DNA of 64,000 nucleotides. Origin: Macrostomum lignano (Eukaryota). A model generated the notes under the pieces. That model worked only from the letters and a program-made list of their open reading frames with translations, ran no database searches and was not told where the DNA came from. A program made the position numbers and the translations under genes. Location: contig NIVC01000157.1 in the NCBI GenBank assembly GCA_002269645.1, positions 372,001-436,000 of the forward strand. The letters are read 5' to 3'. Of this stretch, positions 737-64,000 are shown piece after piece; positions within the stretch are counted from its first letter, which is position 1; the number at the start of each line of letters is the position of its first letter.

Positions 737-6779
<6,043 letters not shown>

Positions 6780-7208
6780 CTTCAATTTCTGTTGAAACAA
6801 TTAGAATCTAAAAATTTTTAGTTCAAAAAATTGCCGCTAAAAATCCTAAAAAAACTTTTTTTTAGTTGGCTTACCTGATCAATGGACAGAATTTGTACCG
6901 ATTAAAAACGTAGAGTAGGAATATCTGCTAATTTTTTGCAAGCCTAAATCTTATACACTAAAAATCTTAAGCCTAAAGGTCTTTCTTATCGAATGGACTA
7001 ATGGACTTATACCCAGATAGACTGGACGATCTTCATTTGGCAGAGAAAGCAAATGTCAATTCCAGTACACGATCGGTGCTCTGACAAACTTTAGTTAGCA
7101 CGAGTTGAACGAGTGACACGACAGTGCCCACCGTTATCGCAATCAGGCAGCCGAAGCAACTGACTATAGCTTACCCAGTCCTCACAGCACAGATACTGGT
7201 ACTGCCAG

Positions 7209-7387
7209 CAGGGACCACTCAAACACCGGGACGGGAAACTAGGAATTTTTTACGAGGCTGGTCTTTTATCAGCAGTAGAAAATAACCATAGACAACAAAG
7301 TAACACAGCATCTCTCTAATGCAAATAATTGCCAGCCAGCCTCGTAAAAAAATTTAGTTTCCCGTCCCGGTGTTTGAGTAGTCCCTG
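7209..7387. mobile_element. hAT-superfamily MITE, 179 bp
   Basis: ~50-bp TIRs (cagggaccactcaaacaccgggacgggaaacta... / ...tagtttcccgtcccggtgtttgagtagtccctg) and a perfect 8-bp TSD actgccag at 7201-7208 and 7388-7395. Confidence 0.9.
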
Positions 7388-8038
7388 ACTGCCAGTTCAC
7401 TTTGAGGCAAGAAGTGCAAGACAGTCAGTTATCGCAAATGTCAATCCTCGACTTGATTTAAAGTTCAAACTTATAGCTGGATAATTGTCTATGTCACGTG
7501 TGGTACGGCCGTTGTCTTGGAAAATACTTATTTTTGTGTTTGCACCAATGGCCAACGTCCATCTAGCTGATACGCGTGTGTTACTTTTGTTTAATGAGTA
7601 CATCAATATTTAAAAGTAATTGAGAAGTTAGGCTATATTTTCTGACTAATTTAATAAATGTGCGTACCTTACGAATACGACAAAAACTATGCCAATCAAA
7701 TAATTGCCAACGTGTTTTGATGCTCTTTTCCAGTCATGCAAAAATGAGTCTTCACAGTCACAGATCGTCTTTTTGGCCACTCATGTCCAATGCAACAAAA
7801 TTTACTAAATTTAAAAACACCGCACTCCCTCTGGAGTGAGACACCACAACTTTAAATTTGCGCACTCACCTCTCACTTACGTAAAAGAGGGGTGGGTGCT
7901 GAGCACACGCGTACATGACTCAAAACTGGGGGTTGGGCGCTACAAATGTACGGTACAAGATCGGTACAAAGCAAACAAAATATCATAAATATTTTTAATA
8001 AAAGTAAATAAATATGATGTGTATTTTATGTAGTACAT

Positions 8039-8069
8039 GGCTCGATTCCAAGTGCAGTCAGATTAATTT
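8039..8069 (+). mobile_element. Short fragment of the tRNA-derived SINE found at 43492-43851
   Basis: ggctcgattccaagtgcagtcagattaatttg matches the SINE B-box region (ggctcgattccaagtgcagtcacattaatttg) with one mismatch. Confidence 0.6.
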
Positions 8070-8211
8070 GTAAATAAGTAGATTTTTATTTATTTATTTA
8101 GTCAACTTGATAAACCTTCCAATTCCGAACTGCTTAAAAGTCAGGATTCCCGTCCGGAAAGCTAATTAAAAGAAACACTCATGTTAGTAACTTTTTGTGT
8201 ATAATTATGCT

Positions 8212-10701
8212 CTAATTTTTTTTTATGTCCGGAGTGACGAGGCGGAGACGGGGCAAGTGGCGATCGAGGCGAGGCAGGCCCAAGGCCAAAAGAGAAGAGT
8301 TAGGAGCGGCAAGAGGAGGGGGGCGGCTGACGATGTGGGCTGACGCTGCTTCCACCGCGCGCCGGCGAGCCTCGACATCAGATTGAATGTAGCGGAACAC
8401 GGAGTCGCTTCACCAGACACCCAAGGCCATCACTTCGTGCACAGACGCGCCTGAGCTGGCGAAGAAGGTCGCCCCGCCTCTGCGCAATGAATGCCCGGAG
8501 ATTGCCGTCGGGTCGAGGCCGGCCGCTGCCGCCGCTTTGAACAGCTGTCTTGAAAACTGCGGTCGACACACCGGGACCAGTCATTGGCTCGCCCGAAAAG
8601 CAAACAGGAGTGGGTGCATACGTGCGCAAATGCATACATACGCGTTTTCCGAGGATAGAATGGTCTCCCGAGTGGGACACGGCTGAGGAGTGAGTCGGGT
8701 CCGTTTCCGGCGATATTGTTGTGCTTGAGGTGGACGAGGACCGCGCAGAAGGGGCAAAGCGGATGAGGAGAACCGTTCGCAGCAGGCAGTCGTGGCAGCC
8801 AGACCAGGTGCTGCCGCTCAGCAAACTGGATTGTCTTGCTGCGCCGGACCCGCAGTTCGATGCCGTTGTCGCGCAGCTGCAGGTCGTTCAGCCGCACCGC
8901 TCCGGCTGACAACTGCGGGCTCCGAGCGGCTGACGCAGAGGGGAGGCACAGATTCTCCGCACGCAGCAATCCCCAGAACCCGACCAGCAGACAGCATCAG
9001 AAGGCCCCGCCGCGGCAGGATGTCGTGTCGATGTGTGACTTGAGCTGCTGCAGCATGGCGGGTGTTAAGCCGACTTTCTGTCTCGCATGGGCGCCCCGTT
9101 GCCGTTTGACGCCTTGGAGAGCGAGTCGCACTAGGGGGTGAGCAGTCGGGTCGGCCCTCTCAGCCAGCTTGTAGAGCCACGACACCGCGTGCAGGTAGGT
9201 GGAGAAGCTGGCAAATGCGGTCAGGTGCTTGAGGTGTAGGTGGGAGACGTAGAGTGACACCGTCGGTCCGTCGGCCTCTAGAGGGTGCACGCTGATCTCG
9301 CTGCAGAAGCGCTCCCAACACATCAGCTGGGACCGGAGGGCTCGTCTTGTATTCGGTGCCAGGGCTTGGTTGAGCAGCCGGTCTCGTTCCGTCCTCAGGG
9401 GCTCCGCTGCAGCTGCTGAACCTGTGAGAGGAGAGATTGATAGGAAGCAGCAGACAGGGCGTGCGATGCGATAACAGATGGGTCAATATAGATAGTTCCA
9501 TAGTAACGAAATAACAAATTAATTAGGCCATGCTTATGATTCAGGCGAGAAGCTGGGTCACTAAAAATTTGAAACCGGCCAGGGACATGAAACACCTGGA
9601 AGTGAATGCGGTGCTTCAGCGCGAGAAAATAGCCGTGCGCATCAGCGCCTGGACCACCGAGGGCTTGGCAGAGCCCTTGCGCAGCATCCCAGCCACAGAC
9701 GAGTTGTCGGTGTAAAAAACGATGTGGCAGTTAGCTAGGCGCTCCTTGAAAAGGATAATAAAAAGCAGAGGCATAACACACTCCAGGTAGTTGATGTGCA
9801 GTCCATGCAGTGCACCACTAAAGTCAGCCAACCAGTTGACATACATCCAGTCGGTCCTTGTTCCGTCAGAAATGACTGCTGCGCCACCTGATAGGCAGGC
9901 GTCCGTCTCAACCACCAGCCGGTTCGCGAAGGCCGGCCACAGTTCGATTCCATGCATCCAGTTCGTTGCTGATCGCCAGAAACGCAGCTGCTCACCAAGT
10001 TGACCTTCGATGCACATCTTGTGGTGAGGCAAGTCCAGGCTGTTGGTCAGGTTGATGAGGCCCCGAAGTAACGATCTACCAGCGCGGGCGACCTCGCAAA
10101 ACCAACCGATTTTTCCGCAGAGCTTCTGCAGTTGCTTTTTGCTGAGTCGCTTGCTGGCAGCTGCGGCGTCCAGCAGGCTCTGCAAAGATTCGAGTTTCTC
10201 CTGCGGGAGAGTCAGGCGGCCTTCAGCCGTATCAATGTGGATGCCGAGAAAAACCATAGACTTGCTGGGTGGAGATAGCTTCTCCCAATTGATGGAAAAA
10301 CCCAGGCGGCGCAGCAGACTCAGAAGAGTGCTATAGGCTTCCTGGCAGGCTTCCAGCGTGCTCGCGGCAACGGCAAAGTCATCGAGGTAGTTGCAGATGA
10401 CGTGGTACCCTCGCCGAACCATCATACGCTTGACGGCTTCCGACAACCGGTGGAAAATGTTGATGCTAGCGGCGGACCCGAAGCCGAGGCAGGTGTCAAC
10501 GAGGTACCTGGGCTCACTCTCGCCGCTGAAGGTCCACCGGAGTCCTGTGATGGAGTAGGCTGTAGAGCTGACGGGACAGGAGCGGTAGGCTTTGGCCAGA
10601 TCGATTTTAAAGGCAGCAGCGCCCTCTCGCGCTGAGCTGAGCAACATATAAAACGCTCGTAAAGCACATGCACACCGGGGGTTAGGGGTGCTAGTCAGCA
10701 C
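8212..10701 (-). mobile_element. Degenerate, 5'-truncated tyrosine-recombinase retrotransposon (DIRS order, Ngaro-like)
   Basis: RT at 9616..10701 (KIDLAKAYR, LGFGSAASINIF, NYLDDF). RNase H (ETDAC, YTDN, frameshifted FHVPGRFQIFSDPASRL). YR at ~8212-9400 (ALAPNTRR, GLLRAENL, VRRSKT, SGHSLRRGGAT, GVW*SDSVFRY). In-frame TGA stops at 8997 and ~8410. No gag, and no methyltransferase domain between RH and YR. Confidence 0.88.
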
Positions 10702-11398
10702 GTATGTACAGCGCGTAAAACCAGTACGAGTACAAGGCGATAAAAAAGGGGGGCAGCGAGGCAGGTCGCTCCGCCATTAAAACCGGGTAAAGCCCACTTG
10801 CTTTACCCGCCCATAAAACTACTCTTTGTCTACGTGTGTTAGTAGCATTCTTCTGTTTTTACGGTAGAAGTCCAACATTAGTAATATTTAAATAAGAATT
10901 CAACAAAGCAAAGTACATGTCAATTTGCAAAGACCAATTTTACTAAATTGGTACAAAAGTTTTATGGAAAAGTGGTGATTTTTTAAGAAAATCAGATTAG
11001 ATAAATTTAAAAGTTGGTGTATTTGTAGTTAAAAAATCGATAGGGTTTAAACTGCGTTTTAGTTAAAATAAAAAACTGGGAATGAGTTTTTTATTTTAAA
11101 TAAAAAGCAAAAATAATTTATTTTAAGCAAAAAATATCTGGGTAAAATTCAACACGGTTTTGTGACAATGTCACCAAGATTCTTATGTCGCCAAACAGCC
11201 CCCTACATCTTTTGTTTAATTTTTTGTTGACTTTTTATTCGGCGCTGTAGTTTGTTATAATTAAAAAATTATTAGAAGCAAAATAATATGAATATGGCAA
11301 TCATATAATATATTATTACTAATTATTTCAAGTTCTTTTATAGCTAATGTTTCGGTTATATCGTCAATTCTGTGAAGAAGTGTTAGCACACGGTACAT

Positions 11399-14300
11399 TT
11401 AAATTTTGTAATCAGTCTCTAAATAAGCAAACAGGCAGGGCAGGATTGGCACATTTCGGTCACTCGTCCTTCCATTGGCCAGAAAAGTACTCAATGAGTC
11501 ATCCATGGCGCTCATAAAAGGCGTGGCTGGAGGTGCGGCCAGTTTCCCGGTGAACTTGCTGACATACTGACCGTCTCTGTAGGTGGTGATGTCCTCATCA
11601 CGACTATCGAACCACTTGTAGAACAGCTTGGACGCGTCAAGGTCGAAGCCATAATTAGCCTGTTTGGCCAGCCCAACCGTGTAATCCGTCTGAAGATCGA
11701 CAGCTTCTTGGTGACTTTTCAGCGCTGCCTCTCTGAAAAATGAAAGTTAACCAATTAAAAGGCCGACACCTGAGCACATAGAAAGGGGTGGACGTGTTGT
11801 ACCCAGCCACGCACTCATACACTTGCTTCATGCTCACCGCTCCAGCCAAGGTTTCGTGTCGGCGTCCATCTCGGCAGAGCTTGGCAGCTGGATGCCGCCA
11901 GTCAGGTAGCGAACTGTCCACAGAGCCTGTGCATCGAACATTGGGAAGCTGTAGAATTGGTTCTGAGCTCCCACATACATCAGGCGGTTGTTGCCACCAG
12001 CAAGCCAAATGATGCCTTTGTACAGTCCGGCCGGGTACAGAAGGTTCGGACCTCGAAGTCGCAGTTGCTCGGCCAGGTACGGGTAGTGGTGCAGGTATCC
12101 GGTGGCCAGAATGATGCTTTCGATCTAAATTTAGGGGAACATGACAATTAGAAGGTCAGACCATTTTAAATTTTAGGAGCCGACACTTCATTGATCATTT
12201 GCTCGAGTTCAATTCTCTGACACAACTTTTAGGAGATTATTTTAAAAAGTGCATTATTTATTTTTGTTATTGTTAAGCAACAGAAGTACAATTATCAGTG
12301 TCTGAGCCAAACTTCCTACTGCAAAATAAGACAATACAAGACTTCCAAGAAGCATATTGACAACCTTTTCCACCGAGCCATCAGCGAATCGAGCCCAGCC
12401 TTCTGTGCCTCCGCCGTCGCTTGGACCGACCTCCGTCACCAGGGGTCGCTCGGACACGCTCTCCGGCCAGCGAAATCCTAGCGGGTTGGTGCGGTAGCTG
12501 CTGATCACCCTGGAGGCGCCGAACTTGACTGACTGCAGCACCGAGTCCTCGGCTGAGTAGCTGGAGCCGACAACCAGCACCCGCTTGCCGGTGAATTCTC
12601 GCCAGCTGCGCAGGTCGTGCGTGTGCACCACGCGTCCTGGGAAGCGCTCGATGCCTGGATTAGATGGTCAGTTATAGATAATTGAGAGGTTTTCTACAGA
12701 TTCTCCATTCTAATTAAGATAAAATGTACTTTAAACTAATTGAGCTGGGTTGTTTTGCGACTGTTTTTTCCTGCAGCCGTCGCAGGTACCCTAGCCTGTA
12801 GGTCATTGCGCCAACTGTAGCTGGAGCCCCGCAAAAAGCTGGAGCACAATGGAAGATATTCAGGCCGCACATTCATTCACACTACTAGACCCAGGTGAGT
12901 TAGCCCAATGCTTACTGCAGCAGAAAAAGTAAGTATTGCTTTCCGATTATTTTATTGCGTTGAGTTCCAACGCAGAGCTGCATATGGTGTAAGACTGTTT
13001 AGCTACTCACTGTGGCCGAGATCAGTAGCTAATAGACAAAGGCACTTCTTTCATTTCACGTAGTCGTTGGCCAGAGCAAGACAACGCGGGGCCATAAATT
13101 ATATTTTATTGTTGAACAAACAGCCCGCTATAGCTTCAAGTTGCAGCCTGAAGGTAGACAGCACAATAAAGCGTCTGAATAAAAAAATGAAATCATTCTT
13201 TGAGTGAGGGTTCGCTTACACAATCAAGTGAAGAGGCTGAGAGATTTAAAGCTGAGCTCTACGCTAAAATGACGCGTGGACGAGGCGCCAGTACCAGGGG
13301 CTTTAGCACCAGGGGCTTTAGCACCAGGGGCTTTAGCACCAGGGGCTTTAGCACCAGGGGCTTTAGCACCAGGGGCTTTAGCACCAGGGGCTTTAGCACC
13401 AGGGGCTTTAGCACCAGGGGCTTTAGCACCAGGGGCTTTAGCACCAGGGGCTTTAGCACCAGGGGCTTTAGCACCAGGGGCTTTAGCACCAGGGGCTTTA
13501 GCATCAGGGGTGCCAGCACCAGGGGCGCCAGCACCAGGGGCGCCAGCACCAGGGGCGCCAGCACCAGGGGCTTTAGCACCAGGGGCTTTAGCATCAGGGG
13601 TGCCAGCACCAGGGGCGCCAGCACCAGGGGCGCCAGCACCAGGGGCGCCAGCACCAGGGGCTTTAGCATCAGGGGTGCCAGCACCAGGGGCGCCAGCACC
13701 AGGGGCGCCAGCACCAGGGGCTTTAGCACCAGGGGCTTTAGCACCAGGGGCGCCAGCACCAGGGGCGCCAGCACCAGGGGCGCCAGCACAGGTTAACTCG
13801 GGGATAAAATATTGTATCTGTTGGATTTCGAAGCGCACTCCAGAGTCATCCTACCTTTGAAGTAGGGCACATTAGGGTTGGAGAAGTGCCCGCTGCAGTT
13901 GACAACGTAGTCAAACTCTTTTGGATCAAGTACACGGTTTTGCTCCAGGTCCTTCACCAGCACACTGAACTTCTCCTTGGCTGGGTCGAAAGTCACGCTT
14001 TGAACCGAGTGTAGCAGAGTCACCTTGGGCTTCAGGTTGTACTGGTTCCAGCGGCCTGAAATTTGACAAGAAATTTCAATTAATTTAGTGTGTAATAACG
14101 TTTAAAGGTGATCTTTTAATACGCTGATACTGAATGAGCTCCGATACTTTCTAGGGCTGTAGGGTAAATTTAAACAAAAAAGCTCTCAAACTTTAAGAGT
14201 AAAAATGTCTAAGTCACACCTGCCGCAGGAAAATAACAATTATCATTAGATGGTTTAAACAAGCGCGCCAATACTGTACGCAGGCACGAACTCATACACA

Positions 14301-14851
14301 CGCTCACACAGGGCGACCCAAAGCCAAACACGTCAGCGACTGAACTGCTTTGCCCCATTAACAAGTAGTAGAATACAAAATTGCAAAATTACAACCGGTT
14401 GAAAACCACTCAACTTCAACGTACCAGACAGATAGTCCCTAATCGCTTCTCTCGGCAGAAACGATGGTGTCTTACGACCGAAGTGCTGCTCAAAAGTATA
14501 GTCGGGATATTCAATAGTCTCCTTGGGGTTGTTGGACCACAGGCTGCGGTACATGCTGCCGTGAACGGTTTCACCATATTTCGTCAGTGCCTGCAAAGGT
14601 TGAAACCAAATTGGTATTGAACACTTGCGGTTGTATAGCACTGAAATAAAGTACATGTGGACCTACGCACCAGTTCTCCAGGTGTAGTTCCACAGACCGC
14701 TCCAGTCGTTCTGTTTCTCAAAGCAGGCCACCTGAGGCATTTTTGCAACAGCGCTGCCGCCTTGAAGCCGCAGCTTCTCCAGGTGGTAGAGCACCGACAT
14801 TCCCGAGGGTCCGGCCCCGATAACGCAAAGTGATCTTTTGGCTGCCTGCAT
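11399..14851 (-). CDS. Flavin-containing monooxygenase, bacterial mFMO/Tmm-like, paralog 2 (6 exons; apparent +1 frameshift in exon 2)
   Basis: complement(join(11399..11732,11838..12124,12365..12654,13855..14055,14425..14590,14671..14851)). Exons 3-5 have the same lengths as paralog 1 (201, 290, 287). Exon 2 is 166 nt versus 165 (extra T in the run at 14579-14581). Motifs: GAGPSG, WSNNPKE, GSSYSAED. Confidence 0.85.
13284..13789. repeat. 15-bp minisatellite (gcaccaggggcttta / gcaccaggggcgcca) in FMO-2 intron 3
   Basis: Direct reading; a homogeneous block is followed by a mixed higher-order block. Confidence 0.97.
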
Positions 14852-16347
14852 CTTCTCTTTGTCTTTTTCCGAAAATAACAAGCTTAAATGAAACCCGTGG
14901 CATTGTGTTTTATTTTTATACCGATGCTGCACCAAAAAAGTTGATAAAAAGTTAACGAGACAATCGAATAATTAATTTTTTTTCGATCAAGTCAAAAAAC
15001 GCATTGTTTATCTTTTACAAAAAACGGAAGCAGCTTTTATATATCAAATTAAAATTAAAAACAAAAAATACAGTTAAAATTATTCAAGCAAAACTTATTG
15101 GTCAAAAATTGATTCGATGGTAGCTAAATTTTGCAGATAAAACAGAATTTATATTAATGGTCTTTGGGTGTTTTTCTTAATACGACAAAATCTATGATAC
15201 AAGCGTATTAACAGTAAACGATAAGAATATATAAGTAAGTTTTCGCTGCATTAAGAACAAATATTTAAGTAGACTTATAACTGGAAAAGTAGAAAACGAT
15301 TCATTCCGTTGCATTAGAAAAATTGTGATATTTTATTTCAAAAAAATTATTTTAGAAAAAATTAATTTACCGCCATTTTTGCATGCGCAATTTAACGATC
15401 GTCGTCTTATTTTTACAATGTAAAATGCGCCGCCTACAGCGAACAATATACCAGCTGGTTCAAGCACAACGTGTGCACACAGATCAGACCACACTTAAGG
15501 GATTTTTACATCTGAAGTTGCTGATTTATACAAATACACGTTATTATAGCTACAGCTAAATTGAATAAATGGTACTGAATGAGTAAAGATCTAAAGGCCA
15601 AAGGTTTTTTTATACTCAATAGTTTTTGTGCGAGACGGGCTTAAACAAAAAAGCGTTAAAAGTAAATTTTGTCAATTTTTTGCAAATCTATTGCATAAAA
15701 CATTTGTTATTTTTTAGCTTCTACCATTCCTGCTAACCTATTTTTTACACTTACCAGGTCAGCTTGACCCTGTGTGCTATCTGTGCATCGGCTTAGTATT
15801 TTTCGCTTAATTAAAATACGAGTTTGCGCAGTAAAGTGCTAATTAACTTTGCTAAATAAATTAAAGCCAACGCCTAAACTTCTAGAAAAAGTGGATAAAA
15901 TAAATGCCTTTGGATTATACAAAGGGCCTATAGAATTTGATATTTAGACTTATTTAACATGAAAATAAAATCTAGCTTTAAAAAGTACGATCTATTGAAT
16001 TTAATTCTCACGAGACTTTTCTCTCATGAACTAACCTGAACTCAGTTCAGCAGACTGCTACTAGTGTGTTCAGTTCAGCTTAGGTTTAAAATGCCACGTG
16101 ACATTAAGACAATTTAAAAAAAAATCTTGTCTTTTTCAAATTTATTGCACTTAATTCTTACAATATAGTAGTCAAATTTCATGCAGAACCCTGCAGTTGC
16201 TCAAAATGGCACCTGCAATGAGCTGCGCAGTTTCTATCAGGATTAGTCTATATATATGCAGCTTGTGTAGGGCCGAACTAAGCAGCACTTATAAACAGTT
16301 TTAAAAAATTATTCAATTATAGCCTGTAGCCCTGTAATAGCCTCTCG

Positions 16348-17518
16348 ATGATTCCGGTGAGTTTTCCTGCAGCTTACACAACCATTTTTAATAGCTAAAA
16401 CTAGTTGCTTTGGCTAATTGAAAAGGACTCCACTTGAGCCTCAAACTGGCTTGTTTGTACATGTACATTCCGCAACATGTTCATGTGTGCACCCCGAATC
16501 TACAGTGACCAAGAAGTGGCAGCTTTAATCCAATTCATATAGTCGTAATCTAACTTTCATTCAGTACAGCTCTTATTGCACAAGAGTTGGTGAATCGAGT
16601 GCACAAATATACCTCATAAAAATATTCATTGCTTGTCTACTCGGCTCTGTGAAATTGCAGTTACATGCACTGGCAGCAGGCGTCCTGTGCGCTGCCCTGG
16701 CACTCTGCGCAAGTGCCAATGAAGACCTGATGCACCGGCGCTGCTCTGCCCAGTGGACTCTGGTGGCCACGCACCAGAACTGGAGCCCGAAACCAACTGA
16801 GAAATCGTTTCACTATCAAGTGGGCGCGCACAAGCTTCAAAACTCCCGGAACTTACTGAAGTCCATTCTAGTGACAGTCAAAGACGATGGGATGCAATTC
16901 CCATCTACAGCTGCCGGCATAGGTACTCCGAGTACTAAATATGGCACTTTTAAAGTTCCAGCCTATGCGACGGTCAATGTTTGGCAGCTGGTTGCTCGAA
17001 CAGGCAGCGAGGTTGCGAGCCTTGAGAAAACAATCGCTCTCAGAGATCAACGAAAGCCGTATTCAGTAGTATCTTGCCAAGTCACTTACCAGCTGCCGCA
17101 GCGCATCACTGGCAACACCTGGGTGCAGCTCAGGCACGACGGCACCGGAAAGTACTTGACAACCACCAACAGAAAGGGTTGGGACGCTGGGACGCTGAGC
17201 TCAAGCAAGAACAACAAGTTTAGGTTTGAGGAGATCAGATCGGGTGTCTACAGAATAGTTGCCTACTCAGTCCGTTTCTCTGGATACAATTACCTGTACT
17301 CCTCCTTTGCCGGGGGCATCTATTTGGATGATAGCGACACCTCAAACGGGAAGCAGCTCTGGACGCTGAGCACCAGCGACCTGAGAGCCGGAGACTCCAT
17401 CGCCATCGAGAATGTGTACTACCCCGGTGCCTACATGATCAGGTACGAAGGCTCAACTACCAATGTGTTCTGCGAGTACACGAGCCACCCAGACTATTGG
17501 ACTATTGAACTGGCCTGA
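16348..17518 (+). CDS. Secreted lysenin-like protein 1 (aerolysin-type N-domain plus C-terminal beta-trefoil), 288 aa
   Basis: join(16348..16356,16661..17518): ATG ATT CCG|gtgagt ... ttgcag|TTA gives the signal peptide MIPLHALAAGVLCAALALCASA. The C-terminal domain matches lysenin as recalled: RKGWDAGTL~RKSWPAATL, FSGYNYLYSSFAGGIYLD~YSGYEYAYSSDQGGIYFD, KQLW~KQRW, LRAGD~LRHGD, TNVFC~TNVYC. The N-domain has W-x7-N, VG and VPA...VWQL. Confidence 0.87.
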
Positions 17519-18067
17519 TCCAACATTTACTGAATTAACGAATTAACAATCGTACACAACACGGGCTGAAATCTAATATGGTTGATTTTCCTAGATTTTT
17601 ATTTAATAGAATCTTTAGGCTAAATAATTAGTAATATCTACAAAGACGTTCGAACCTTTTTCTGAAACTCTACCGGATTATTTTTGTTTCATCCAAATAG
17701 CATACGTTGCAGGTACAGAAATTATTTGCTTCACTCTCACTGTTCGAATAACCAAATAAATGAGCAATTTAAAACCGCTATGGATGTTTGGCGTAACCGA
17801 AACAAATCGCTGCATGTCTTGTCTTCCACTTTTCAGTAGAGAGAATGGGAAATGTCCGTCAGATCCTACGGCGCAGCTGCATCAGCGGTTTCGCTCTTAA
17901 ATGAGTCGCCATCTGAGAGTTTGACAGGCAATTTTGTTGCTGAGTTCGTTCGGCCTTCGTTAACTACTTTTCCCAGAAGTGCACCATGTGACACTGACTT
18001 CTCAAGACCCTGACGGAGTATTTTTGTTGTTGTTGTTGAAAGCAAGCTAAAACTCAGTCAACAAGGC

Positions 18068-18429
18068 TGTCAGGGCTGAGGGGTGTCGGGGCTGAGGGGT
18101 GTGGGGGCTGAGGCCGGTGTCAGGGCTGAGGTGTGTGGGGGCTGAGGTGTGTGGGGGCTGAGGGGTGTCAGGGCTGAGGTGTGTGGGGGCTGAGGGGTGT
18201 GGGGTTGAGGCCGGTGTCAGGGCTGAGGTGTGTGGGGGCTGAGGTGTGTGGGGGCTGAGGGGTGTCAGGGCTGAGGTGTGTGGGGGCTGAGGTGTGTGGG
18301 GGCTGAGGGGTGTCAGGGCTGAGGTGTGTGGGGGCTGAGGGGTGTCAGGGCTGAGGGTGTCAGGGCTGAGGTGTGTGGGGGCTGAGGGGTGTCAGGGCTG
18401 AGGGTGTCAGGGCTGAGGGGTGTCAGGGC
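18068..18429. repeat. G-rich minisatellite (gggctgagg/tgtgtg, 14-18 bp units)
   Basis: Direct reading. Confidence 0.92.
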
Positions 18430-18840
18430 ACAAATTTACTTATGTTTATTCTTAACTCTGGTTAATGTGAGCTTAAAGATAGAGTACCAGAAACAAGTCA
18501 GTCGATTTTCGCGCAAAATTTTTAACCATTTAGAAATCCGCATCTCAGAGCTGCAGAACTGCAGAACCAGAATTGACAGGTTCCAAACTAGTTTTAGTTA
18601 TGAAAACTTGCTAATAATAAAATTTGTAGATCTATTATTAGTGTTATTCGATAGTCAGGGCATCTCTTTGAACTGTTTACATTTAATTTAAATAAATTAA
18701 TGTTAACATCTGAAACTAAGTTTAGTCAGCCCCAAGCCGATAATTCAATCTAAGTTATAAATTCTTTAAATTCGTGCCTCTCCGGCTTTGGAGTTCCGCA
18801 AACTTTGTACCCAGCATCCGACGTTCTTCATCGCTCCGAA

Positions 18841-20125
18841 ATGGTTCGAGTAAGTGCGCTAACTTTTTGTTTGAATCATATAATACTCAGTGAGTCAGTT
18901 ATATTTTATAGATAACAAATTATTAATGTTCAAGCATACTTGCAGTTAAAATTTGCATTCCTGTTCTTTTTAAATTTGTTTTAGTTTTGGAAGTCACGTT
19001 GTTAGCATTTTGCAGCATAACAAGATCTGAGTTCATTCAATTTTGTTTGAATTTGTCAAATTAAACCGTATTAAAAACTTGAGTAATTAAGAGTGACAAG
19101 GTAAACTATTCAATGATAAAACAGCAAGTAAGAAAAGAAACCTATTTAACGCTGTTTGCCTTGAAGACGTTAATGAGTCATTGTAGCCAGATCAGAGGGC
19201 TGACAATATTTATAATGTTTTCTATCATTTCATTTTTACAAAAATTCTCCAGGCGCTCAGCCTCCTGGCCCTGTGCACTCTGGCGATATGTACATCGGCC
19301 GAAGCCGCAGGCGACACGGTATCCAAATCGTGCAGTGCTCAATGGACGCTGGTTGCTACGCTGGAAAATTCTCAAAAACGAGCAGTTCTCCAAAATTTTC
19401 ACTACCATGTCGGCTTGCGCTGTCTGCACAATGCTCATAAAGTCCCTTGGGAGACTTTGATATCGATTTCGGTGACCACCCAGATCCTTGGCGACCCTCA
19501 TGGAGTGTCGGAATTCATTTCCACCAATCTCGGACGTCCGAGAGCGACACTCGGATCCGTGCTTGTCCCAGCAAAGTCGGTCGCCAAGATCTGGCAGCTT
19601 GTTGTCCGCACTAACAGTGAAGTCTTTAAATTCCAAAGAACGCAATCAGTCAGAGGGAGCCCCCCACCAATTCTGTCCTGCCACGCGTCTTACCAAGTGA
19701 AGAGGCGCATCACGGAGCAATCTTGGGTGCAGTTGAAGCACGAAAGCTCGAATATGTATTTGGTAACCACTAACAGAAGAGGCTGGGACGCCGGTACGCT
19801 GGGATCCTCAGCTAGCAACAAGTTTCGCTTTCAACAAATCAGGCCAGGTACCTACAGGATCGTTGCCTACTCATACAGGTTCAGCGGGTACAGGTATCTT
19901 TACTCGTCCATGGCCGGTGGGATCTACTTAGACGACAGCGACATCTCGAATGAGAAGCAGCTGTGGACGCTGGATAGAACTGATCTGAGAGAGGGCGATT
20001 CCATCGCCATCCAGAATGTGTACTACCCTGGAGGATATATGATTAGGTATGAAGGCTCAACTACCAATGTCTTCTGCGAGTACACCAACTACCCAGATCG
20101 TTGGATTGTTGAGCTGGCTGACTGA
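18841..20125 (+). CDS. Secreted lysenin-like protein 2, 293 aa
   Basis: join(18841..18849,19253..20125): ATG GTT CGA|gtaagt ... ctccag|GCG gives MVRALSLLALCTLAICTSAEA. Same phase-0 micro-exon structure as paralog 1; the beta-trefoil is roughly three-quarters identical to paralog 1 by eye. Confidence 0.87.
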
Positions 20126-21839
20126 AATACGAGTATTTAGTCTCTAAACTTGTAACTTATGACGTCAAATCAATGATTATAAGATTTTCTGTTTAAACCA
20201 GACACTTTCGACTTGTATGAATCAAAATTTTAATAAGAAGATAAATATGCATCCCACTCTACTTATAGAAAATCTTGCAAAGCGTTAACTACAATTTATC
20301 TACAGACATTTCTGGAGCTGAAACTACTAACAGTAGCGTGAAAGCATATTTGTGTTGCCCCTCAAACTAGGCCATATTATTTTATCATAAAAATCGAAAT
20401 ACCAGCTTAGAGCTTCACATTTATTCAGTATTTCAGTGTTCAAAACAATATGCGCTCCATATGCCATTTACTTTAGAAACTTTACCTGCTTCGTTTAAGT
20501 TAGTCAGTTTTTGCAAGACTACATAAATATTATGATGGGTTTCGGCCTTTCGGCCCCCTTGTGGGGAAGCCTTCGGGCCTCAGGTCTCAGAAATAAATCA
20601 ATTAGAGTCCTGGCCCCCCACTCCTGTCAGATGGTCAGCCCCATGGTAGCTTGATCGTGTGGCGAGCAGTCCAGGCCCTATAGCTAAGAGAGGGACAGCG
20701 AGAGACAAGCAGGGAGAATTTTGAAGGTAGAAATTAGTTAACCCGCAGGTTAGCCAACTCGCTGCCACCAGCCCGTACGTCCTGGCTCATCACACCGGGA
20801 CTCTCGAAATCAGGCTTCCGACTAGAAGGGGCTTCGCACTTACCTGCCAACTAGTGTCTTTTTGCTGTCAATCTCGAAGTCATAGCCGATGATAAGGGAC
20901 ACTGCTGGGACTAGATCGCATTGGCCATGCAGGTACAGAGGGGACTTGTGCAGGGGATTCTTGCAGTGGCGAGACCATGGGTAGCTACATGTACTATTAC
21001 ATTGCTAAATACGAGGAATTGTACTTTTGGCCTTCAACGCGCCAACCAGCCTCTCATACGAGTAGCGCTGATGATAGACTAACTCGAACTTCAGAGATCT
21101 CGCATGATTCATTACCCGAGCCGCTTGGCGAACCTAGAGTGCACGGAGTACATCTCTAGCGCCGTTTTTGCACTATTGGCAATTTTGCTCACTGATTTGA
21201 TAGATTGATCGACTGAGAACTGCCTTGCCATTGGTCCACTGTGACCGGCGCCTACTAGCTTAGCTACTCATCTGAGCCATCGGCGAACAAAGAAATAAAA
21301 CCGATAAAAATAACTATCATATTTAGCCTTCTCCTTAGATCACTTCACACTTCAGATTGAATTGGAGTATCAGACTACTAGCAGTATTATTGAATGACTT
21401 CTGCCTCAGTAACAGCACTACTGAACAAAATGAGCAAAAGTGTGCGCCTAATTCAGCTACTGAAATAGGGGGCAGATAAGGGACCAACCAATCAAGCAAG
21501 TCCAGGTAGCCTCTCACCCAACCAATCAGAAACTCAACAGCCGGAGACCAGGTAATCCACAGTAACCGAATCGGCTTAGTGCTTCGCAGCTGTAGACTCG
21601 GGATGATGCTGTCACAGTCTTCGCAGATAGCTAGCAGGTGATGCTCTTCGCTTGATGCTTGCTGCTGATGACCGGGGGACTCGTCCTTGATGATGATGGG
21701 GGGGGGGGTTGTCGCAATCCGGTGATCAAGAAACGACGGTCGCGCTCCGGGAACCAGAAGTTGCGTGCTGGGCCCGAGCAAGTTGGAGTCCGAGCGGGCC
21801 AAAAACACCGGTTTAAATAGCCGCCAATTGGACCGCAGT

Positions 21840-29227: not shown

Positions 29228-30472
29228 TTAATTTCCAGTGTACACCTCCGATACCAAGGCGTTGAAGGCACGCCAGACAGAATCATTTCTGATACAGACA
29301 GCGGCTCCACCCTGTGTCAGTTGATCGTCCATTCGGTTCAGGTCAGAGAGGCAGACTATGTTCCGTTGCTCTGAGACGCACCACTTTGAGTGGTCCGTTG
29401 TGGTGTTCCATTCCCAAGTATCATCACCAACTGTCATTCTGATTTTTTTAATATTACCACTGATATTCCTCTTTCGCTCGGAAATAGTTCTGAGCCAGGA
29501 CTGAACTCGAAATTCTCCTGCTTGGTACGAATCGCAAATTTTTCTATATATGCATTCCGCTGGGCTATTTTTTCCTTTTACAAACAAATTGAACGGGACG
29601 TTGCCCTTGCTTGAAAAACTCTCAATTGAAATTTCTGTTCGACTTTCGTTTTCGGGAAAGCCAAACTCATGCGGATGATGGTACCTTGGCTTCGCCTGTT
29701 CTAGCCATCCAGAGAGATCTTTAATAGTTTCGCTCTTTACGCTGATGCAGATGAACGATTGCGCATACGTAGGATCTTGACTGAACTCGCTTGGCTCATC
29801 AAATCTGGGGAAATGTCTCGCCGAGAACATCATCCAGAATCCGGGATTCCCAACCATGAACAGTCCTTTCAGATGGCCGAAACCAGGAATCCAGGTTTCA
29901 TTTGGTGGCGGCTTGTCACTGTAAGCGAAAACTGCGCCTCTGTTTTGTCTAGCCTGCTCCAGTGTTTCATAAACCGGTCCTTCTGTCGTAATATTTCCAG
30001 CGTATTCCCAATTTTCTTTATTCCTTGGTGACTTTGATGACAAGTAAGCATATTCATACGAACCTGGCCTTTTAATCGCAATGAACCAGTCTCTGTTTAT
30101 TCCATCAACTTTGCAGCTGAAGTTTTTAAGATTGTTTCGATTATCAACTATCCAGTTCTTGATTTTATCAGCAGCAGTCTGAGCCGCTCCCCGCTGGCTG
30201 CGCCCACCTCCCCTCGCCTTGCCGCCTCCACCGGATGCCTGAGGAGAGGCTGAGCTTCCCGAGGCTGCAGGATATCCAGCGCCCTTGCCTTTGTTACCTT
30301 TTGGGGCCACCAGCATCGGAGGGGTGCCGTTCACCGGCCTCCTGAAAGCTGCACACTTCGGGCACTCGCCACTCAAGTTGCCGACGAGACAGAAGCTGGA
30401 GACTTCATCAGATCCCAGTGTTGCTGCAGCAATGCAACACAACAGAAGCAGCCTTAGGTAGTTCGAAGCCAT
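29228..30472 (-). CDS. DNase II family protein (plancitoxin-1-like), secreted or lysosomal, single coding exon, 414 aa
   Basis: Signal peptide MASNYLRLLLLCCIAAATLG; motifs FSC...DWFIAIK, YSDKPP, GHLKG, GFWMMFS..HFP, YAQSFIC, DHSKW, CLSDLNR...QGGAAVC. An acceptor tttcag lies 2 nt before the ATG. Confidence 0.9.
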   Translation of the reverse strand: MASNYLRLLLLCCIAAATLGSDEVSSFCLVGNLSGECPKCAAFRRPVNGTPPMLVAPKGNKGKGAGYPAASGSSASPQASGGGGKARGGGRSQRGAAQTAADKIKNWIVDNRNNLKNFSCKVDGINRDWFIAIKRPGSYEYAYLSSKSPRNKENWEYAGNITTEGPVYETLEQARQNRGAVFAYSDKPPPNETWIPGFGHLKGLFMVGNPGFWMMFSARHFPRFDEPSEFSQDPTYAQSFICISVKSETIKDLSGWLEQAKPRYHHPHEFGFPENESRTEISIESFSSKGNVPFNLFVKGKNSPAECIYRKICDSYQAGEFRVQSWLRTISERKRNISGNIKKIRMTVGDDTWEWNTTTDHSKWCVSEQRNIVCLSDLNRMDDQLTQGGAAVCIRNDSVWRAFNALVSEVYTGN

Positions 30473-31589
30473 GCCTGAAACCGAAGGACGGAGGAAAGTC
30501 ACATCATTATATAAGAGTTTAACCAATCTAAACAGACTTTGCTAGGAATGCGAGGAACCCTTTGTTCAACAATAGGAAATAGGCGATGAATCTTAGAGTT
30601 TCAAAATTGAGGCTTTGTTAATGCTCCAAATACTTCTTACTGCATGGGTTCAATCCATATTTGCTTACTCAACACAAGAGTACGCTATATAATTTAATAG
30701 TACATTTATTCCCAGAAATAGCAGCGTAAAAAGCTAGCTCAGCAGAGTTTTAGAGGTCCACTACACCAGAGCACCCCACACACCACTCCGCAGCACGCAC
30801 CACTTCAGAACACACAACACTCCACAGCAATGCGCTGGAACTGAATGTCTATAGTTCCTAGCTCACTGGTGGCATGAAGGATTTCCTCGAATCAGACCTG
30901 AGTGAAATTTCTCATAAACTACGATTTTGCTAAATGTTTCTTGAGAATTCGAAATGTCGTCAGATTTTTGCTTCTAACATACGTCGCTAACAGCTGAAAT
31001 TGAAAATAGTATCTTCATACTACATACCTTTATCGCTTTCCTTTAAGAACATGCCTTGTCTTTGCGATTTCCAATTGCTTTCGCGCTTACAGCGAAGCGG
31101 AGAAACTTTGACTTGTATGCGTCTCGACCGCAGCTATAATCCAAACGGACCAGCTCCAGACCAGCCGGCCTCAATGCCCAATGGCGGGAAGCCAGCAACC
31201 TACTGCGAGCGCGGGAAACAGAAGACTCGCAGCTGAGCCTGAGAGCCTAGCAGCCTAGCAGCTGTTGCCTAACAACCCTGCCAGGGACAACCCTGGTTAA
31301 GCGCTAACCCTACCCCGCTCAAACCATTGATTGCTTTGAATTGAGCCTGTGCGTTCTTATTAACTATAAAATACACTGCTTTGAATAATTTTGGATACTC
31401 ATAACACTCATGAAAGCTACCATTGGCATTAGAGAGCCAGTGTGTTTGAAATATTTCTATCGTGTAAGCAGAATATAACGCAGTATGGCAAGCAAGGTTT
31501 TATTATAGCATGACGCCAGACAGCCCGCTCCTCACGCTACTAATTCTCAAGCTGGGCGCATAAGTTCGACCTGTGCCTTATGAAAAGGA

Positions 31590-33749: not shown

Positions 33750-36700
33750 TGATGTGCCGGGGCTATCGTACCTGTGTCATGACAATCATGACAATCATGA
33801 CAGACGTCATGACAATGGCGTCGCAAGCAGAGAAACACTCTGAACTCAATCCCGACAACACGGACCTCGCGGAGGCCTGGCTAACAAGCTTTGCCGCCAC
33901 AGCCAGAATCAAGAAGCTCACTGATACAGACGAGATTCGTGGAATAACCGACTTGTTTCTGTCAAAGGCAGGCCTCTCCGCCATAAAAAACTCTCTCGCT
34001 GATGGCAGCACCCAATCAACTGGAGACGCTGAAATTCGAGCAAATCAATGCGCTGGTCCTTGCCACAATCAGGCCCAAGAAACGACTCATCATCGCCGAG
34101 AGGACCAGATTCCTGTTCACTAAGCAGGAAGCAGGAGAGGCCGTCATGACTTACTACCGCCGACTCAGGGCTGCCGCCTCCAGTTGCGAGACTCTTGGCT
34201 CCAAGCAATCCAAGGAGGAGGACATGATCGCCATGCGGCTGGTGGACGGCCTGGCCTCCTCAGAGCAACAAAAGGAAAATTCTCGAGAGACTTCAACAGG
34301 AAGACCTTTTGCTCAACGCCATGCTCCAAGCTATCGAGCTGCTGGAATTGATTCGCGACTACAACCAGCCGAGCCACGCACCACCAGTCATGGAGGTCGC
34401 CTTCGCCGGCGCTCAGCGCTCCAAGCACAGCGCCCCAGATAGGCATGGCCCGGGGTGCCTGCCCAGCCTATGGAAAACGCTGCTCCATCTGTCAAAAGAG
34501 CAACCACTTCGCATCGGTCTGCAGATCAAAAGGCCGGCAACGAGCCGTCCACCTCCAGACTCAGGATCCTCGGGGAAGCCCCGATCCCGAGGAATCCGGG
34601 ATCTTCACCGCGGGACAAGCAGCAAACCGAGACGGCACCGCGCCTCTCATCCGCAAGATCAAGATCAACGGGTGCGCGCTCCCTATGCAAGTGGACACCG
34701 GAGCGGAGGCCAGTTTGCTCCCCAGCAACCTGTGGAAGGAACTGGGCTGCCCCCGCTTGCGGAAGTGCGACAAAGTCCTGCGGCAGTTCGATGGATCGCG
34801 AATCAGCTGTTTAGGAATGTTCACCGCAGCCTGGGAGTCCCAGGCGAGGTACTTTACAGCCGACCTTATCGTCACGGCGGCCAGACGGCCACACGGACTC
34901 CTCGGGTGGACATCCTGCAGCTGCGGGAGGACGCCATCACAATCTCCACCGTTGAGGGGGCTGGTTGCCTCAGCGATTTCCAGGCCAAGATCAAGTAGAC
35001 GACGCCAAGCCCTTCTACGTTGCAGCTAGGCCCGTGCCCCTCCATCTGCGGGAACGCGTCAACCAGGAGCTCAAACGTCTGGAAGCCGAGGACATCCTGG
35101 AGGCAGTCCCACCGGGCGGGAGTCAGTGAGCCTCGCCAATCGTCTGCGTCCTCAAGCCCAGCGGCAAAGTCCGAGTCTGCGCTGGTTACAAAGTTGGCGT
35201 TAACCATCAGATATGCGGAGACACGTATCCCATCCCGACGGTGGAGACAATTCTTGCCGACGTGGCGGGAATGACAGATTTCGCCACCATAGACCTATCC
35301 GATGCCTATCTCCAGATTCAACTCGATCCTGGAAGCCGTGAGGTCACCACAATTGCCACATCCCTGGGCCTGTTCCGCTACAAGCGCCTGGTTCCAGGGC
35401 TCAAGTCTGCGTCAGTCATCTTCCAGAAAGTCATGGAATCTACTCTCCAGGAGATCGACGGCAAAGTAATCTATCAAGATGACATCCTCCTGGGTGGGCG
35501 CTCACAGTCAGATTTGGCGAATAAGGTCAAGCGCGCAATTGATTTCCTGCAGGCAGCCGGGATGAAGATCAGCCTGGATAAATCCGTCCAAGGACGTCAG
35601 CTTCCTGGGGTACCGGATCAGCGCAGCTGGGGTCACACCGGACCCGGCCCTGGTCGACAAAGTCCGGGCCGTCGAGACGCCGAGCGATCGACAGCAGCTC
35701 GAGTTCCTCGGTCTGTCCAATTTTTTGGGCGCTTTATCCCTAATTACTCTGAGTTGGTGGAGCCACTGAACCAGCTGAGGGCCAAGGGGGGCTGCATTCA
35801 ACTGGGGCACCCAGCAGGACCGGGTCTTCAACCGCTTGAAGGAGCTGCTCTGTACCCGGCCGCTCATCAAGCCGTACGACCGCACCAAGCAGACTGTGCT
35901 CACGACCGACGCCAGCGAGCGTGCAATTGGGGCGGTTCTGACCCAGGACGAGCACCCGATCATGTATTTCAGCAGGCGGCTGAGTGGCGCAGAGTCGGCC
36001 TATTCCAACATCGAACGGGAGGCCCTAGCAATCGTTTGGGCCATGGAGCGCGCCCGCCAGTTCCTGCTTGGGTCCCGCTTCATCCTTCGGACAGATCACA
36101 GGCCCCTCGAGTTCATCCTGAGTCCACGGGGTCAGCTCCCAAAGGTGGCCAACGCGCGGATCCTACGCTGGGCAGTACGACTCATGCCATTCGACTTTCA
36201 AGTAGAGTACGTCAAGGGCTCAGCCATCCCACATGCTGACGCTCTGTCCCGCCTCCAGCTACAGGAGGACTCTCAGGAGCGATCGCCAGCCGAGTCTTTG
36301 GAGCGCCTCATTCACTGGACCGCCAGCGACGTCATCGCCTGGGAGGAGCTAGCAGCGGAGACGAGGGAATCACCCGCCGCATCTCCGCCGCGGACTGGTC
36401 CCGTTGCTCGCTGGCAGAGACCCCATTTAAGTCCGCAAGGCAGTCACTGGCAATCGATCAGGGCGTCATATGCTATGGAGAGCGCCTCGTCATCCCATCG
36501 ACTCTACGACAGCGCGTCCTGGAATCGATTCACAACGACGCCCACTAAGGTTCCAGTGCGACCTGGCAGCTCCTGCGCAACTCGGCTTGGTGGCCGGGCT
36601 TCTGCAGAGACATCGAGGAGTTTGTGAAGGGCTGCGGCACCTGCGCCAAACTACGTCCTTCCAAGACGCAAACCCTTCATCAGTGGCCAACCGAGAGTGA

Positions 36701-37812
36701 GCCCTGGGCCAGAGTGCTCATGGATCACGCTCACGTCCCTGGTGCGGGCCTGTTGTTAATTTTGGTGGACGCAATGTCCGGCTGGCCCGAGGCCATAAGG
36801 GTACCCGACCGCAGCGCCGCCACCGTCAAGAGGGTTCTGCAGACCCTGTTTGCTCGGCACGGAGTCCCCTATACATTGGTCAGCGACAACGCGGCGGAGT
36901 TCCAGGACACTCGCCTGCTTACCTGGCTTGAGAGAGTTGGTTGCCGCGCCCTCAAGACGCCGCCCTACCATCCGCAATCCAACGGCATTGCCGAGAGGAT
37001 GGTGCAACCTGTCAAAAAGGCATCGGCCGGCTGGGATCAAAGCGAGCCGTACGAGTCTTTCCTCGCTAGGATGCTGCTCAACTACTGCTGTGTGCCTCAC
37101 GCAGGCAGACACCTCAGCCCGGCTCAACTGATGGGGTGGCAGCTGCTAAATCCAATCATCGTGCGCACCCCCATCAGAACGGAGCTCTGGTACGCGCCCG
37201 CGGGCCGCCCTGCCGAGCCGACCGAGTTCATCAGCCAAAAGGGCTCCAACACCGCGCTCATCGCCAGGCCGAGGGACCGCATCACTCTGACGCACTTAAA
37301 TCACCTGCGTCCCAGGCTGCCTCCACCTGCCCGGCGGCCAGAGGCCGCCTCGCCCGGGAACCATCCGGCAGAGGACGCGCCTTCGGGAACCATCCGGCAG
37401 AGACGGCGGAGGGCCGAGCAGTGGCTTCACCCTGGCCGGCGCCCCGGTTGCCGTGCCGGCCACGCTATCCGGTCCCGGTGGACAACCCGCGACACCGTCA
37501 GCGGGATCGTCGCGCTATTCCCTGCGGCCGAGTTGCGGCGTGCCACTGCTTCGCTTTGAGAGGGGGGAGATGACGTGCCGGGGCTATCGTACCTATGTGT
37601 ACTTACTCAGCGTACTTTTGTACTGACTAATTATGCATCGTGGGTTCTGACCATGCCCCCTCCCCGCCTTTTGGTTTCGCTTGCGTACGTCTCGTGATTA
37701 TCGATCGCTGTTTAATAATATAAGATGACTCTCGGCTCACACAATTATTTCCGTTTAAAATTCAATCTCATTCTCTTGACTTGACTCATTTATCGCCCGA
37801 GGCGCCATGACA
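33750..37812 (+). mobile_element. Ty3/Gypsy LTR retrotransposon (~4.06 kb, multiple frameshifts, internally deleted 5' LTR)
   Basis: Gag CCHC (CSICQKSNHFASVC), protease (VDTGAEASL), RT (DLSDAYLQI, YQDDILL), RNase H (TDASERAIGAVL, EREALAI, TDHRPL), integrase (CGTC, SDNAAEF, NGIAERMV). PPT gagaggggggaga at 37558-37570; 3' LTR TG..CA at 37571-37812; PBS-like tggcgtcgc near 33816; ctttt TSD (left copy has one extra T). Confidence 0.93.
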
Positions 37813-38030
37813 CTTTTAATGGTTGCTATGGTCCTTTTTATAGTTGCCATGGTCCCATCGATGGTTGTTATGGTCCTATTATGGTTACTGTGGTCCTTTT
37901 ATGGTTGCTATGGTATTTTTACGACTGCTATGGTTCTCTTTATGGTTGCTATGGCGATTTACTTGGCTGCTGTTATAATTTCCATGGTTGCTATGGTTCT
38001 ATTGATTGATCCAATGGTGATATGGTGATT
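37813..38030. repeat. 21-bp minisatellite, right half (more diverged)
   Basis: atggttgctatggtcc-type units. Confidence 0.85.
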
Positions 38031-38068
38031 TCCTTGGATTCTACAAGCGTATTTCCTTAATAACTCAC

Positions 38069-40458
<2,390 letters not shown>

Positions 40459-51332: not shown

Positions 51333-64000
<12,668 letters not shown>

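Follow-up and report, generated by a model that had tools for sequence, protein, structure and literature searches.

The 64,000-nt window of Macrostomum lignano nuclear DNA analysed here (the whole stretch from contig NIVC01000157.1; coordinates are window positions unless another contig is named) contains two genes in tandem, gene 1 at 16348-17518 (+) and gene 2 at 18841-20125 (+), whose products are homologues of lysenin, the pore-forming toxin of lumbricid earthworms. As judged from sequence, profile and predicted fold the homology extends securely to both lysenin domains. An earlier note, made from the letters alone, had described a tandem pair with a 9-nt M-x-x first exon, a phase-0 intron, signal peptides, two shared N-domain cysteines and a conserved C-domain of about 130 aa, and had suspected a non-annelid genome. 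Each of these features was recovered where the note had placed it, and the host belongs to the Platyhelminthes. The central interpretation of the note, lysenin relatives with predicted signal peptides, holds as well.

Both genes share a common plan, a 9-nt ATG-x-x coding exon 1, a phase-0 GT-AG intron and one long exon 2, with the following features. The TATA-like boxes and AATAAA sites are candidates from pattern matches, and the hairpin equivalents were placed by the family alignment.

16290..16296 (+), TATA-like box TATAAAC, 52 nt 5' of the gene-1 ATG, a candidate by consensus match in a pattern scan
16348..16356 (+), coding part of gene 1 exon 1, ATG ATT CCG (M-I-P), followed by the donor GTGAGT
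16357..16660 (+), gene 1 intron, 304 nt, phase 0, GT...AG, ending in TTGCAG
16661..17518 (+), gene 1 exon 2 including the stop, completing a 288-aa product
16661-16717 (+), remainder of the predicted gene 1 signal peptide, within exon 2
16718-17101 (+), gene 1 N-terminal domain resembling a pore-forming module, within exon 2
16796..16957 (+), gene 1 equivalent of the lysenin hairpin Val34-Ile107, 54 residues
17102-17515 (+), gene 1 lysenin-type beta-trefoil, within exon 2
17755..17760 (+), AATAAA, candidate polyadenylation signal of gene 1, 237 nt 3' of the stop
18756..18762 (+), TATA-like box TATAAAT, a candidate 79 nt 5' of the gene-2 ATG
18841..18849 (+), coding part of gene 2 exon 1, ATG GTT CGA (M-V-R), followed by the donor GTAAGT
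18850..19252 (+), gene 2 intron, 403 nt, phase 0, GT...AG, ending in CTCCAG
19253..20125 (+), gene 2 exon 2 including the stop, completing a 293-aa product
about 19253-19306 (+), remainder of the predicted gene 2 signal peptide, within exon 2
about 19307-19705 (+), gene 2 domain resembling a pore-forming module, within exon 2
19385..19567 (+), gene 2 equivalent of the lysenin hairpin Val34-Ile107, 61 residues
19706-20122 (+), gene 2 lysenin-type beta-trefoil, within exon 2
20592..20597 (+), AATAAA, candidate polyadenylation signal of gene 2, 467 nt 3' of the stop

In neither gene does exon 2 hold an in-frame ATG preceding the signal peptide, and its reading frame is closed by in-frame stops 45 (gene 1) and 23 (gene 2) codons upstream, so that the initiator must come from an upstream exon. 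An in-frame TAA lies four codons 5' of the gene-1 ATG. The spliced gene-1 protein agrees at every residue with GenBank PAA89291.1 (UniProt A0A267GTD9, "hypothetical protein BOX15_Mlig014210g1"), and the same 9-nt exon is therefore already used by the existing annotation, in which gene 1 appears at three loci (g1, g2 and g3, the latter two on other contigs). The junction of gene 2 is proposed by analogy with gene 1, and its exon-1 and acceptor sequences are kept in a second locus on contig NIVC01000472.1 (L001) of the same assembly, GCA_002269645.1. No gene is called in the GenBank contig at the position of gene 2, either in the window (18841-20125) or in L001 (12507-13797), and neither version of its protein was found in a collection of 15 billion protein sequences; gene 2 is apparently a missed annotation. 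A tblastn search with both proteins gave no third copy within the window. The spacer between the genes carries a G-rich minisatellite (18068..18429; Tandem Repeats Finder) of about 22 copies of the 16-nt unit TGTCGGGGCTGAGGGG, with a higher-order unit of 48 nt.

The two proteins are 58% identical overall, with an uneven distribution: 40% in the N-domains and 75% over the 138 aa of the C-domains. Both begin with hydrophobic, signal-type leaders, MIPLH-ALAAGVLCAALALC-ASA/NE in gene 1 and MVR-ALSLLALCTLAIC-TSA/EA (or alternatively AEA/AG) in gene 2, where the slash marks the cleavage site predicted by the -3/-1 rule. The leaders were judged on hydropathy. For the hydrophobic core the best 12-residue Kyte-Doolittle mean reaches 2.5 in each protein, whereas lysenin scores 0.78 and its three nearest unnamed relatives (P0007, P0009 and P0010) score 0.2-1.0; small residues occupy -3 and -1 in both leaders, as in AXA-type cleavage motifs. 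Lysenin and its earthworm relatives could not accommodate a leader, as their fold starts within about 10-20 residues of the initiator Met. Both flatworm proteins thus carry predicted signal peptides that are absent from lysenin.

The cysteines common to both N-domains lie in CSAQW (C31 in gene 1, C30 in gene 2) and in SC (C142 and C146, respectively), and map to the part of the domain that remains folded as the cap in lysenin. The two may form a disulfide, as the earlier note suggested; among the other family members the pair C31/C142 does not co-occur. One trefoil cysteine (C274/C278) is common to both proteins and lysenin.

Searched with phmmer against all PDB sequences, both proteins matched lysenin and nothing else (gene 1, E 9e-22, residues 99-287 to lysenin 103-294; gene 2, E 2e-21), and the trefoil alignment of gene 1 with lysenin contains three one-residue gaps. 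The 297-aa lysenin sequence agrees exactly with 5gaq_A. Trefoil identity to lysenin and the nearest relatives is 37-41% in pairwise comparison. Pfam has no model for either domain, and its lone match was a sub-threshold RicinB_lectin_2.

The N-domain required more sensitive comparison. A profile-profile alignment (hhalign) of the two flatworm sequences against 14 family sequences gave a probability of 90.8% and an E-value of 1.2e-6 over 120 columns. An AlphaFold2 model of mature gene 1, built from an 11-sequence alignment without templates, reached a predicted local distance difference test score (pLDDT) of 88.5, and Foldseek against the PDB ranked monomeric lysenin first for it (3zxd, about 290 columns, E 1e-20, template modelling (TM) score 0.63-0.70), with generic trefoils far behind. 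The gene-2 N-domain modelled alone (residues 25-154, pLDDT 81.9) likewise retrieved the lysenin monomer first (E 1e-5, TM 0.74-0.78), followed by weak matches (E 1e-3 to 1e-1) to epsilon toxin, parasporin-2, aerolysin, the Bombina aerolysin-like protein, lamprey immune protein, Cry51 and Dln1. The earlier note had named best hits to unrelated trefoils, with no aerolysin-like N-domain, as an outcome that would tell against its proposal; the structure comparison returned lysenin first, with the aerolysin-type N-domain included. The predicted plan is an aerolysin-type module of about 128-133 residues followed by a lysenin-type beta-trefoil of about 138 residues, and by profile the N-domain is homologous to that of lysenin, yet much more diverged than the trefoil.

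Window 2469-26987 and L001 align collinearly, with a DNA identity of about 95%. Both open reading frames (ORFs) are intact there, with the same exon-1 and acceptor sequences as in the window, and the 15-mer comprising exon 1 and donor of gene 2 recurs identically at L001 12507. The counterpart of the gene 1 intron is 396 nt long (94% identical where alignable) and that of gene 2 is 406 nt (95% identical); introns and upstream DNA diverge by 2-6% between the loci. Coding differences are mostly synonymous, with 6 synonymous and 3 non-synonymous in gene 1 (ratio of non-synonymous to synonymous rates, dN/dS, 0.15) and 24 and 12 in gene 2 (dN/dS 0.14). Pooled over both genes, the synonymous excess has a binomial P of 1e-9 against neutrality. 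Both genes are under purifying selection. Between the paralogues dS is saturated at 1.46, which indicates that the tandem duplication is old, and dN is 0.59 in the N-domain against 0.18 in the trefoil, with a dN/dS of 0.28 for the N-domain.

These data bear on whether the window holds a working host pair at all. Since gene 2 is unannotated in GenBank and absent from the protein collection, one might suspect that the pair are pseudogenes in decay or ORFs that arose by chance, or that assembly or contamination produced an artefact. Against this, the ORFs are intact at two independent loci with dN/dS near 0.15, the canonical introns occupy the same position in both genes, and gene 1 is annotated at three loci. 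The flanks hold typical animal genes (DNase II, a dynein heavy chain and, upstream, two FMO-like genes) along with RVT/rve fragments of retroelements, and NIVC01000472.1 has the same gene order. We consider this explanation extremely improbable. Contamination, a horizontal-transfer artefact, a chance ORF and a pseudogene were each rejected on the introns, the metazoan neighbours, the syntenic second locus and dN/dS.

What the proteins do is less evident than what they are. We favour, with moderate confidence, the reading that the old tandem duplication encodes secreted two-domain members of the lysenin family which still follow the aerolysin pathway, with another receptor and with a shorter or more deeply seated stem. 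The signal peptide would direct entry into the endoplasmic reticulum and release outside the cell as a soluble monomer. The trefoil would then attach it to a target membrane by a pocket in which three of the five phosphocholine contacts of lysenin are preserved. The N-domain would oligomerise, as lysenin does into a nonamer, and unfold its beta-hairpin into the membrane, permeabilising the cells of microbes, prey or parasites. The earlier note had put forward mucosal defence, predation and lipid or glycan recognition as possible roles.

In the lysenin pore, Val34-Ile107 (74 residues) refold into the barrel hairpin (PMC4823867, PMC4865846), of which the 33 residues Val54-Ser86 extend about 4 nm below the cap (PMC4865846). 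Its tip is Glu71, and Phe70 and Tyr79 form aromatic girdles (PMC4823867, PMC4865846). Across solved members of the aerolysin family the insertion loop and pre-insertion strands average 75 residues (standard deviation 8) and contain 23-44% Ser+Thr, and the membrane-spanning region measures about 3.5 nm (PMC4823867). Hairpin lengths in the lysenin family were taken from an alignment anchored on the invariant Gly43 and the (I/V)-P motif at 107-108, and complete family members have 73-78 residues, with the exception of P0009 (62).

Several observations, from the hairpin, the lipid contacts and the homology itself, weigh against the favoured reading. The hairpin equivalents are 13-20 residues shorter than in lysenin, which places them about 1.8-2.6 standard deviations under the aerolysin-family mean, and the stem must consequently be shorter or differently seated than that of lysenin. 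The gap falls directly after the GD turn, leaving no counterparts of Phe70, Glu71 and Tyr79; most of the returning membrane strand is gone, and the MTxxEIY motif of that strand is missing from both proteins. Two to three prolines occur in the segment, where nearly all relatives have none, and Ser+Thr amounts to 20% in gene 1 and 16% in gene 2, under the family range. If the cap geometry of lysenin is assumed and the 41 cap-lining residues are kept, 13 residues would be left in gene 1 and 20 in gene 2, which by simple proportion would make stems of about 1.6 and 2.4 nm, respectively, against the 3.5 nm or so of the membrane-spanning region. As to the homology, pairwise BLAST of the N-domain against the relatives gave no significant match (best 28 bits), and the alignments supplied to AlphaFold included lysenin-family sequences, so that the fold agreement depends partly on sequence homology. 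A scan of the hairpins for period-2 hydrophobic moment, a measure of beta-amphipathicity, was uninformative, as even lysenin did not rise above shuffled controls.

The lipid contacts, listed from PMC3526787 and mapped through the family alignment, add to these counter-indications. Five sphingomyelin contacts and five phosphocholine-pocket positions of lysenin were compared.

Lys21, sphingomyelin contact: Thr in both flatworm proteins
Tyr24, sphingomyelin contact: Ala in both
Tyr26, sphingomyelin contact: His in gene 1, Leu in gene 2
Gln117, sphingomyelin contact: Gln, kept, the sole survivor of the five
Glu128, sphingomyelin contact: Ser in gene 1, Lys in gene 2
Lys185, phosphocholine pocket: Lys in gene 1, Arg in gene 2
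Ser227, phosphocholine pocket: Ser, kept
Gln229, gate of the phosphocholine pocket: Ala
Tyr233, phosphocholine pocket: Tyr, kept
Tyr282, phosphocholine pocket: Phe, with loss of the hydroxyl

Three of the five pocket positions are thus kept if Lys and Arg are both counted at 185. In lysenin the double mutation Y24A/Y26A almost abolishes sphingomyelin binding (PMC3526787), and the flatworm target is probably not sphingomyelin read in the manner of lysenin. The tryptophans Trp20, Trp187, Trp245 and Trp291, on which folding or oligomerisation depends, are all present in both proteins; replacement of Trp20 by Ala stops oligomerisation and lysis in lysenin (PMC3526787). The shortened, proline-containing hairpins of 54 and 61 residues, the replacement of four of the five sphingomyelin contacts and the partial retention of the phosphocholine pocket, all as aligned, go beyond what the earlier note had seen.

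It is very unlikely that the pair is simply equivalent to lysenin, that is, a sphingomyelin-specific cytolysin differing only in its export route. The overall homology, the same two-domain architecture and the partly kept pocket would fit such an equivalence, but both of the tyrosines just mentioned are among the replaced contacts, the gate Gln229 is lost and the hairpin is shortened. The divergence of the N-domain, the deletion in the hairpin and the loss of most sphingomyelin contacts mean that lysenin-like action should not be assumed.

A weightier alternative, which we regard as plausible though somewhat doubtful, is a secreted binder that makes no membrane-spanning barrel, with a lectin- or opsonin-like function in recognition, agglutination, or a mucus or adhesion role, perhaps forming prepore-like rings on surfaces. 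In its favour, the hairpin is 13-20 residues shorter, with the deletion exactly at the transmembrane tip, and it contains prolines and lacks MTxxEIY. The distribution of constraint points the same way: the trefoil exceeds the N-domain in identity between the paralogues and has the lower dN, and it remains 37-41% identical to relatives for which the N-domain is undetectable by BLAST. In addition, P0019 and P0023, two proteins found in the family search described below, have the trefoil alone behind a signal peptide, which implies that it can function without the aerolysin module. On the other side, the N-domain is still constrained (dN/dS 0.28 between paralogues, with whole genes near 0.15 between loci), its model is still that of an entire pore-forming module, including a central hairpin and the polar turns KDDG or GDPHG, and Trp20, which lysenin needs for oligomerisation, is invariant. 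The short hairpin of P0009 indicates that shorter stems recur in the family. We retain the secreted pore-former with a modified stem and receptor as the preferred reading.

The surroundings of the pair show differences from L001 as well as unrelated genes and repeats. The two FMO-like (flavin monooxygenase) genes lie on the minus strand at about 2469-8222 and about 11123-15000, as judged by collinearity with called genes of L001, relative to which tandem repeats are expanded at 3060-4300 and 13290-13792. A retroelement insertion peculiar to the window copy occupies 8222-10814; this stretch has no counterpart in L001 and includes an ORF for reverse transcriptase (9616-10701, minus strand). ORFs on both strands at 22.8-24.1 kb are repeat-derived in appearance. 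Further downstream are an ORF of the DNase II family (29228-30526, minus), reverse-transcriptase and integrase-core ORFs in a region of 59% G+C (35241-37559, plus) that are probably the pol remnant of a long terminal repeat retrotransposon, and an ORF of 740 aa whose product has a Mab-21 C-terminal domain (46868-49090, plus). Extreme skews in strand composition at 38001-40000 (GC skew 0.50, AT skew 0.43) and 48001-50000 (AT skew 0.56, 62% G+C) point to satellite DNA or sequence of low complexity. A dynein heavy chain gene with very long exons (54832-60438 and 61932-63926, minus; DHC_N2, AAA_6 to AAA_9, MT stalk and Dynein_heavy) extends past the window end.

The family is very rare in sequence collections, as the earlier note had held when it wrote of very few known homologues. 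When a profile of the two genes was run exhaustively with HMMER against 1.84 billion cluster representatives, 25 clusters were retrieved at E <= 1e-3 and 10 at E <= 1e-10, and at E <= 1e-30 the query's own cluster alone. Of these, P0013, P0029 and P0032 were rejected as spurious repeat-protein matches. A word-indexed protein search with gene 1 alone returned only its own 99%-identical cluster, and one with a profile including lysenin returned eight proteins. The genuine relatives are earthworm lysenins and lysenin-related proteins, together with unnamed contigs of 1-2 kb from SRA assemblies and JGI or ENA metagenomes or metatranscriptomes (sample codes include JGI 3300032168, SRR27386403 and ERR7672947). 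The nearest by profile are P0009, P0010/P0033 and P0007 (E 1e-26 to 1e-19, trefoil 39-41% identical), which are nearer than earthworm lysenin. More distant unnamed lysenin-like contigs are P0011, P0012/P0040, P0015, P0016, P0018, P0021, P0030 and P0046. Signal-type N-termini occur in three other full-length lineages (P0040, P0046 and P0021), all unnamed transcript or metagenome contigs; an abundance of already characterised signal-bearing homologues, which would have spoken against the earlier note, was not found.

Literature linking lysenin to Macrostomum, flatworms or planarians, or mentioning the locus tag Mlig014210 or a pore-forming toxin of M. lignano, was not found, and the terms "lysenin-related", "lysenin-like" and "lysenin family" were met, in the literature searched, for lumbricid earthworms only. 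An annelid genome paper reports lysenin in E. fetida and its absence from Enchytraeus (PMC8460440). The "undescribed subfamily" of the earlier note is accurate insofar as no published description turned up, and too strong insofar as gene 1 had already been deposited as a hypothetical protein.

The flatworm pair and about 20 unnamed environmental or transcriptome clusters imply that the family is older and wider than earthworms, and extend to another phylum what the searched literature treats as an earthworm speciality. Lysenin serves as a standard probe for sphingomyelin and as a nanopore scaffold, and no other pore of the aerolysin family was solved at atomic resolution before it. As a natural experiment, the flatworm proteins bear on the minimum working length of an aerolysin-type hairpin and on the retuning of lipid or glycan specificity in the trefoil pocket. 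They also offer a first candidate for a pore-former that flatworms would secrete in defence or feeding. Practical stakes are moderate; a novel probe that binds lipids, or a nanopore scaffold of reduced length, might result. M. lignano is a transgenic model amenable to RNA interference, which makes the site of expression and the function directly testable.

The trefoil of this family is not restricted to the aerolysin architecture. It occurs on a MACPF scaffold (P0022/P0049), with a beta/gamma-crystallin (P0024) and, as mentioned, alone behind a signal peptide (P0019, P0023); P0026 is a further protein with a lysenin-type trefoil outside the aerolysin architecture. The trefoils of P0022/P0049, P0024 and P0019/P0023 are 29-34% identical to that of gene 1 and share its GY-Y-YSS-GGIYF-KQ-W core and a C-terminal ending of the type W-x-I-E-L-A-D. 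These proteins lack the aerolysin-type module, so that only the targeting domain is in common with the flatworm pair. The lysenin-type trefoil may thus be a targeting domain shared by two unrelated classes of pore-formers. A more far-reaching and tentative proposal, which we consider possible but rather unlikely in its entirety, is that of "short-stem" lysenins: an ancient lineage beyond earthworms that was moved to the secretory pathway in the flatworm and lost 13-20 hairpin residues, forming either a shallower pore with a non-sphingomyelin lipid or glycan receptor or a non-lytic surface-binding ring, its trefoil being the targeting module common to those two classes.

Compared with known systems, the pair is a variant within the lysenin family and no new kind of system, with one gene deposited unnamed and the other apparently unannotated. 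Lysenin and the lysenin-related proteins LRP-1, LRP-2/fetidin and LRP-3 of Eisenia fetida and E. andrei (3ZX7, 3ZXD, 3ZXG, 5EC5 and 5GAQ) have the same two-domain plan in 297-300 aa, against 288 and 293 aa in the flatworm. The trefoil is 37-38% identical to that of lysenin. In the pore-forming module, sequence alignment covers the last third, and the remainder is matched by profile and predicted fold. Unlike lysenin, the flatworm proteins have a predicted signal peptide and the extra cysteine pair (C31/C142), and they come from a marine flatworm, not from lumbricid earthworms. P0007, P0009 and P0010, the nearest relatives, differ from the pair in lacking a signal peptide. The transcript and metagenome relatives share with the pair a W-x-L-V motif after the N-terminal Trp, P0007 also YxGSTTNVFCEY, and P0009 the short hairpin of 62 residues, where other complete relatives have 73-78. 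With the wider aerolysin superfamily (aerolysin, Clostridium perfringens epsilon toxin, parasporin-2, Cry51, zebrafish Dln1 and the Bombina aerolysin-like protein) the flatworm proteins have in common a plan in which a lectin-type receptor domain accompanies the pore-forming module, a likeness that appears in the predicted fold and not in sequence similarity.

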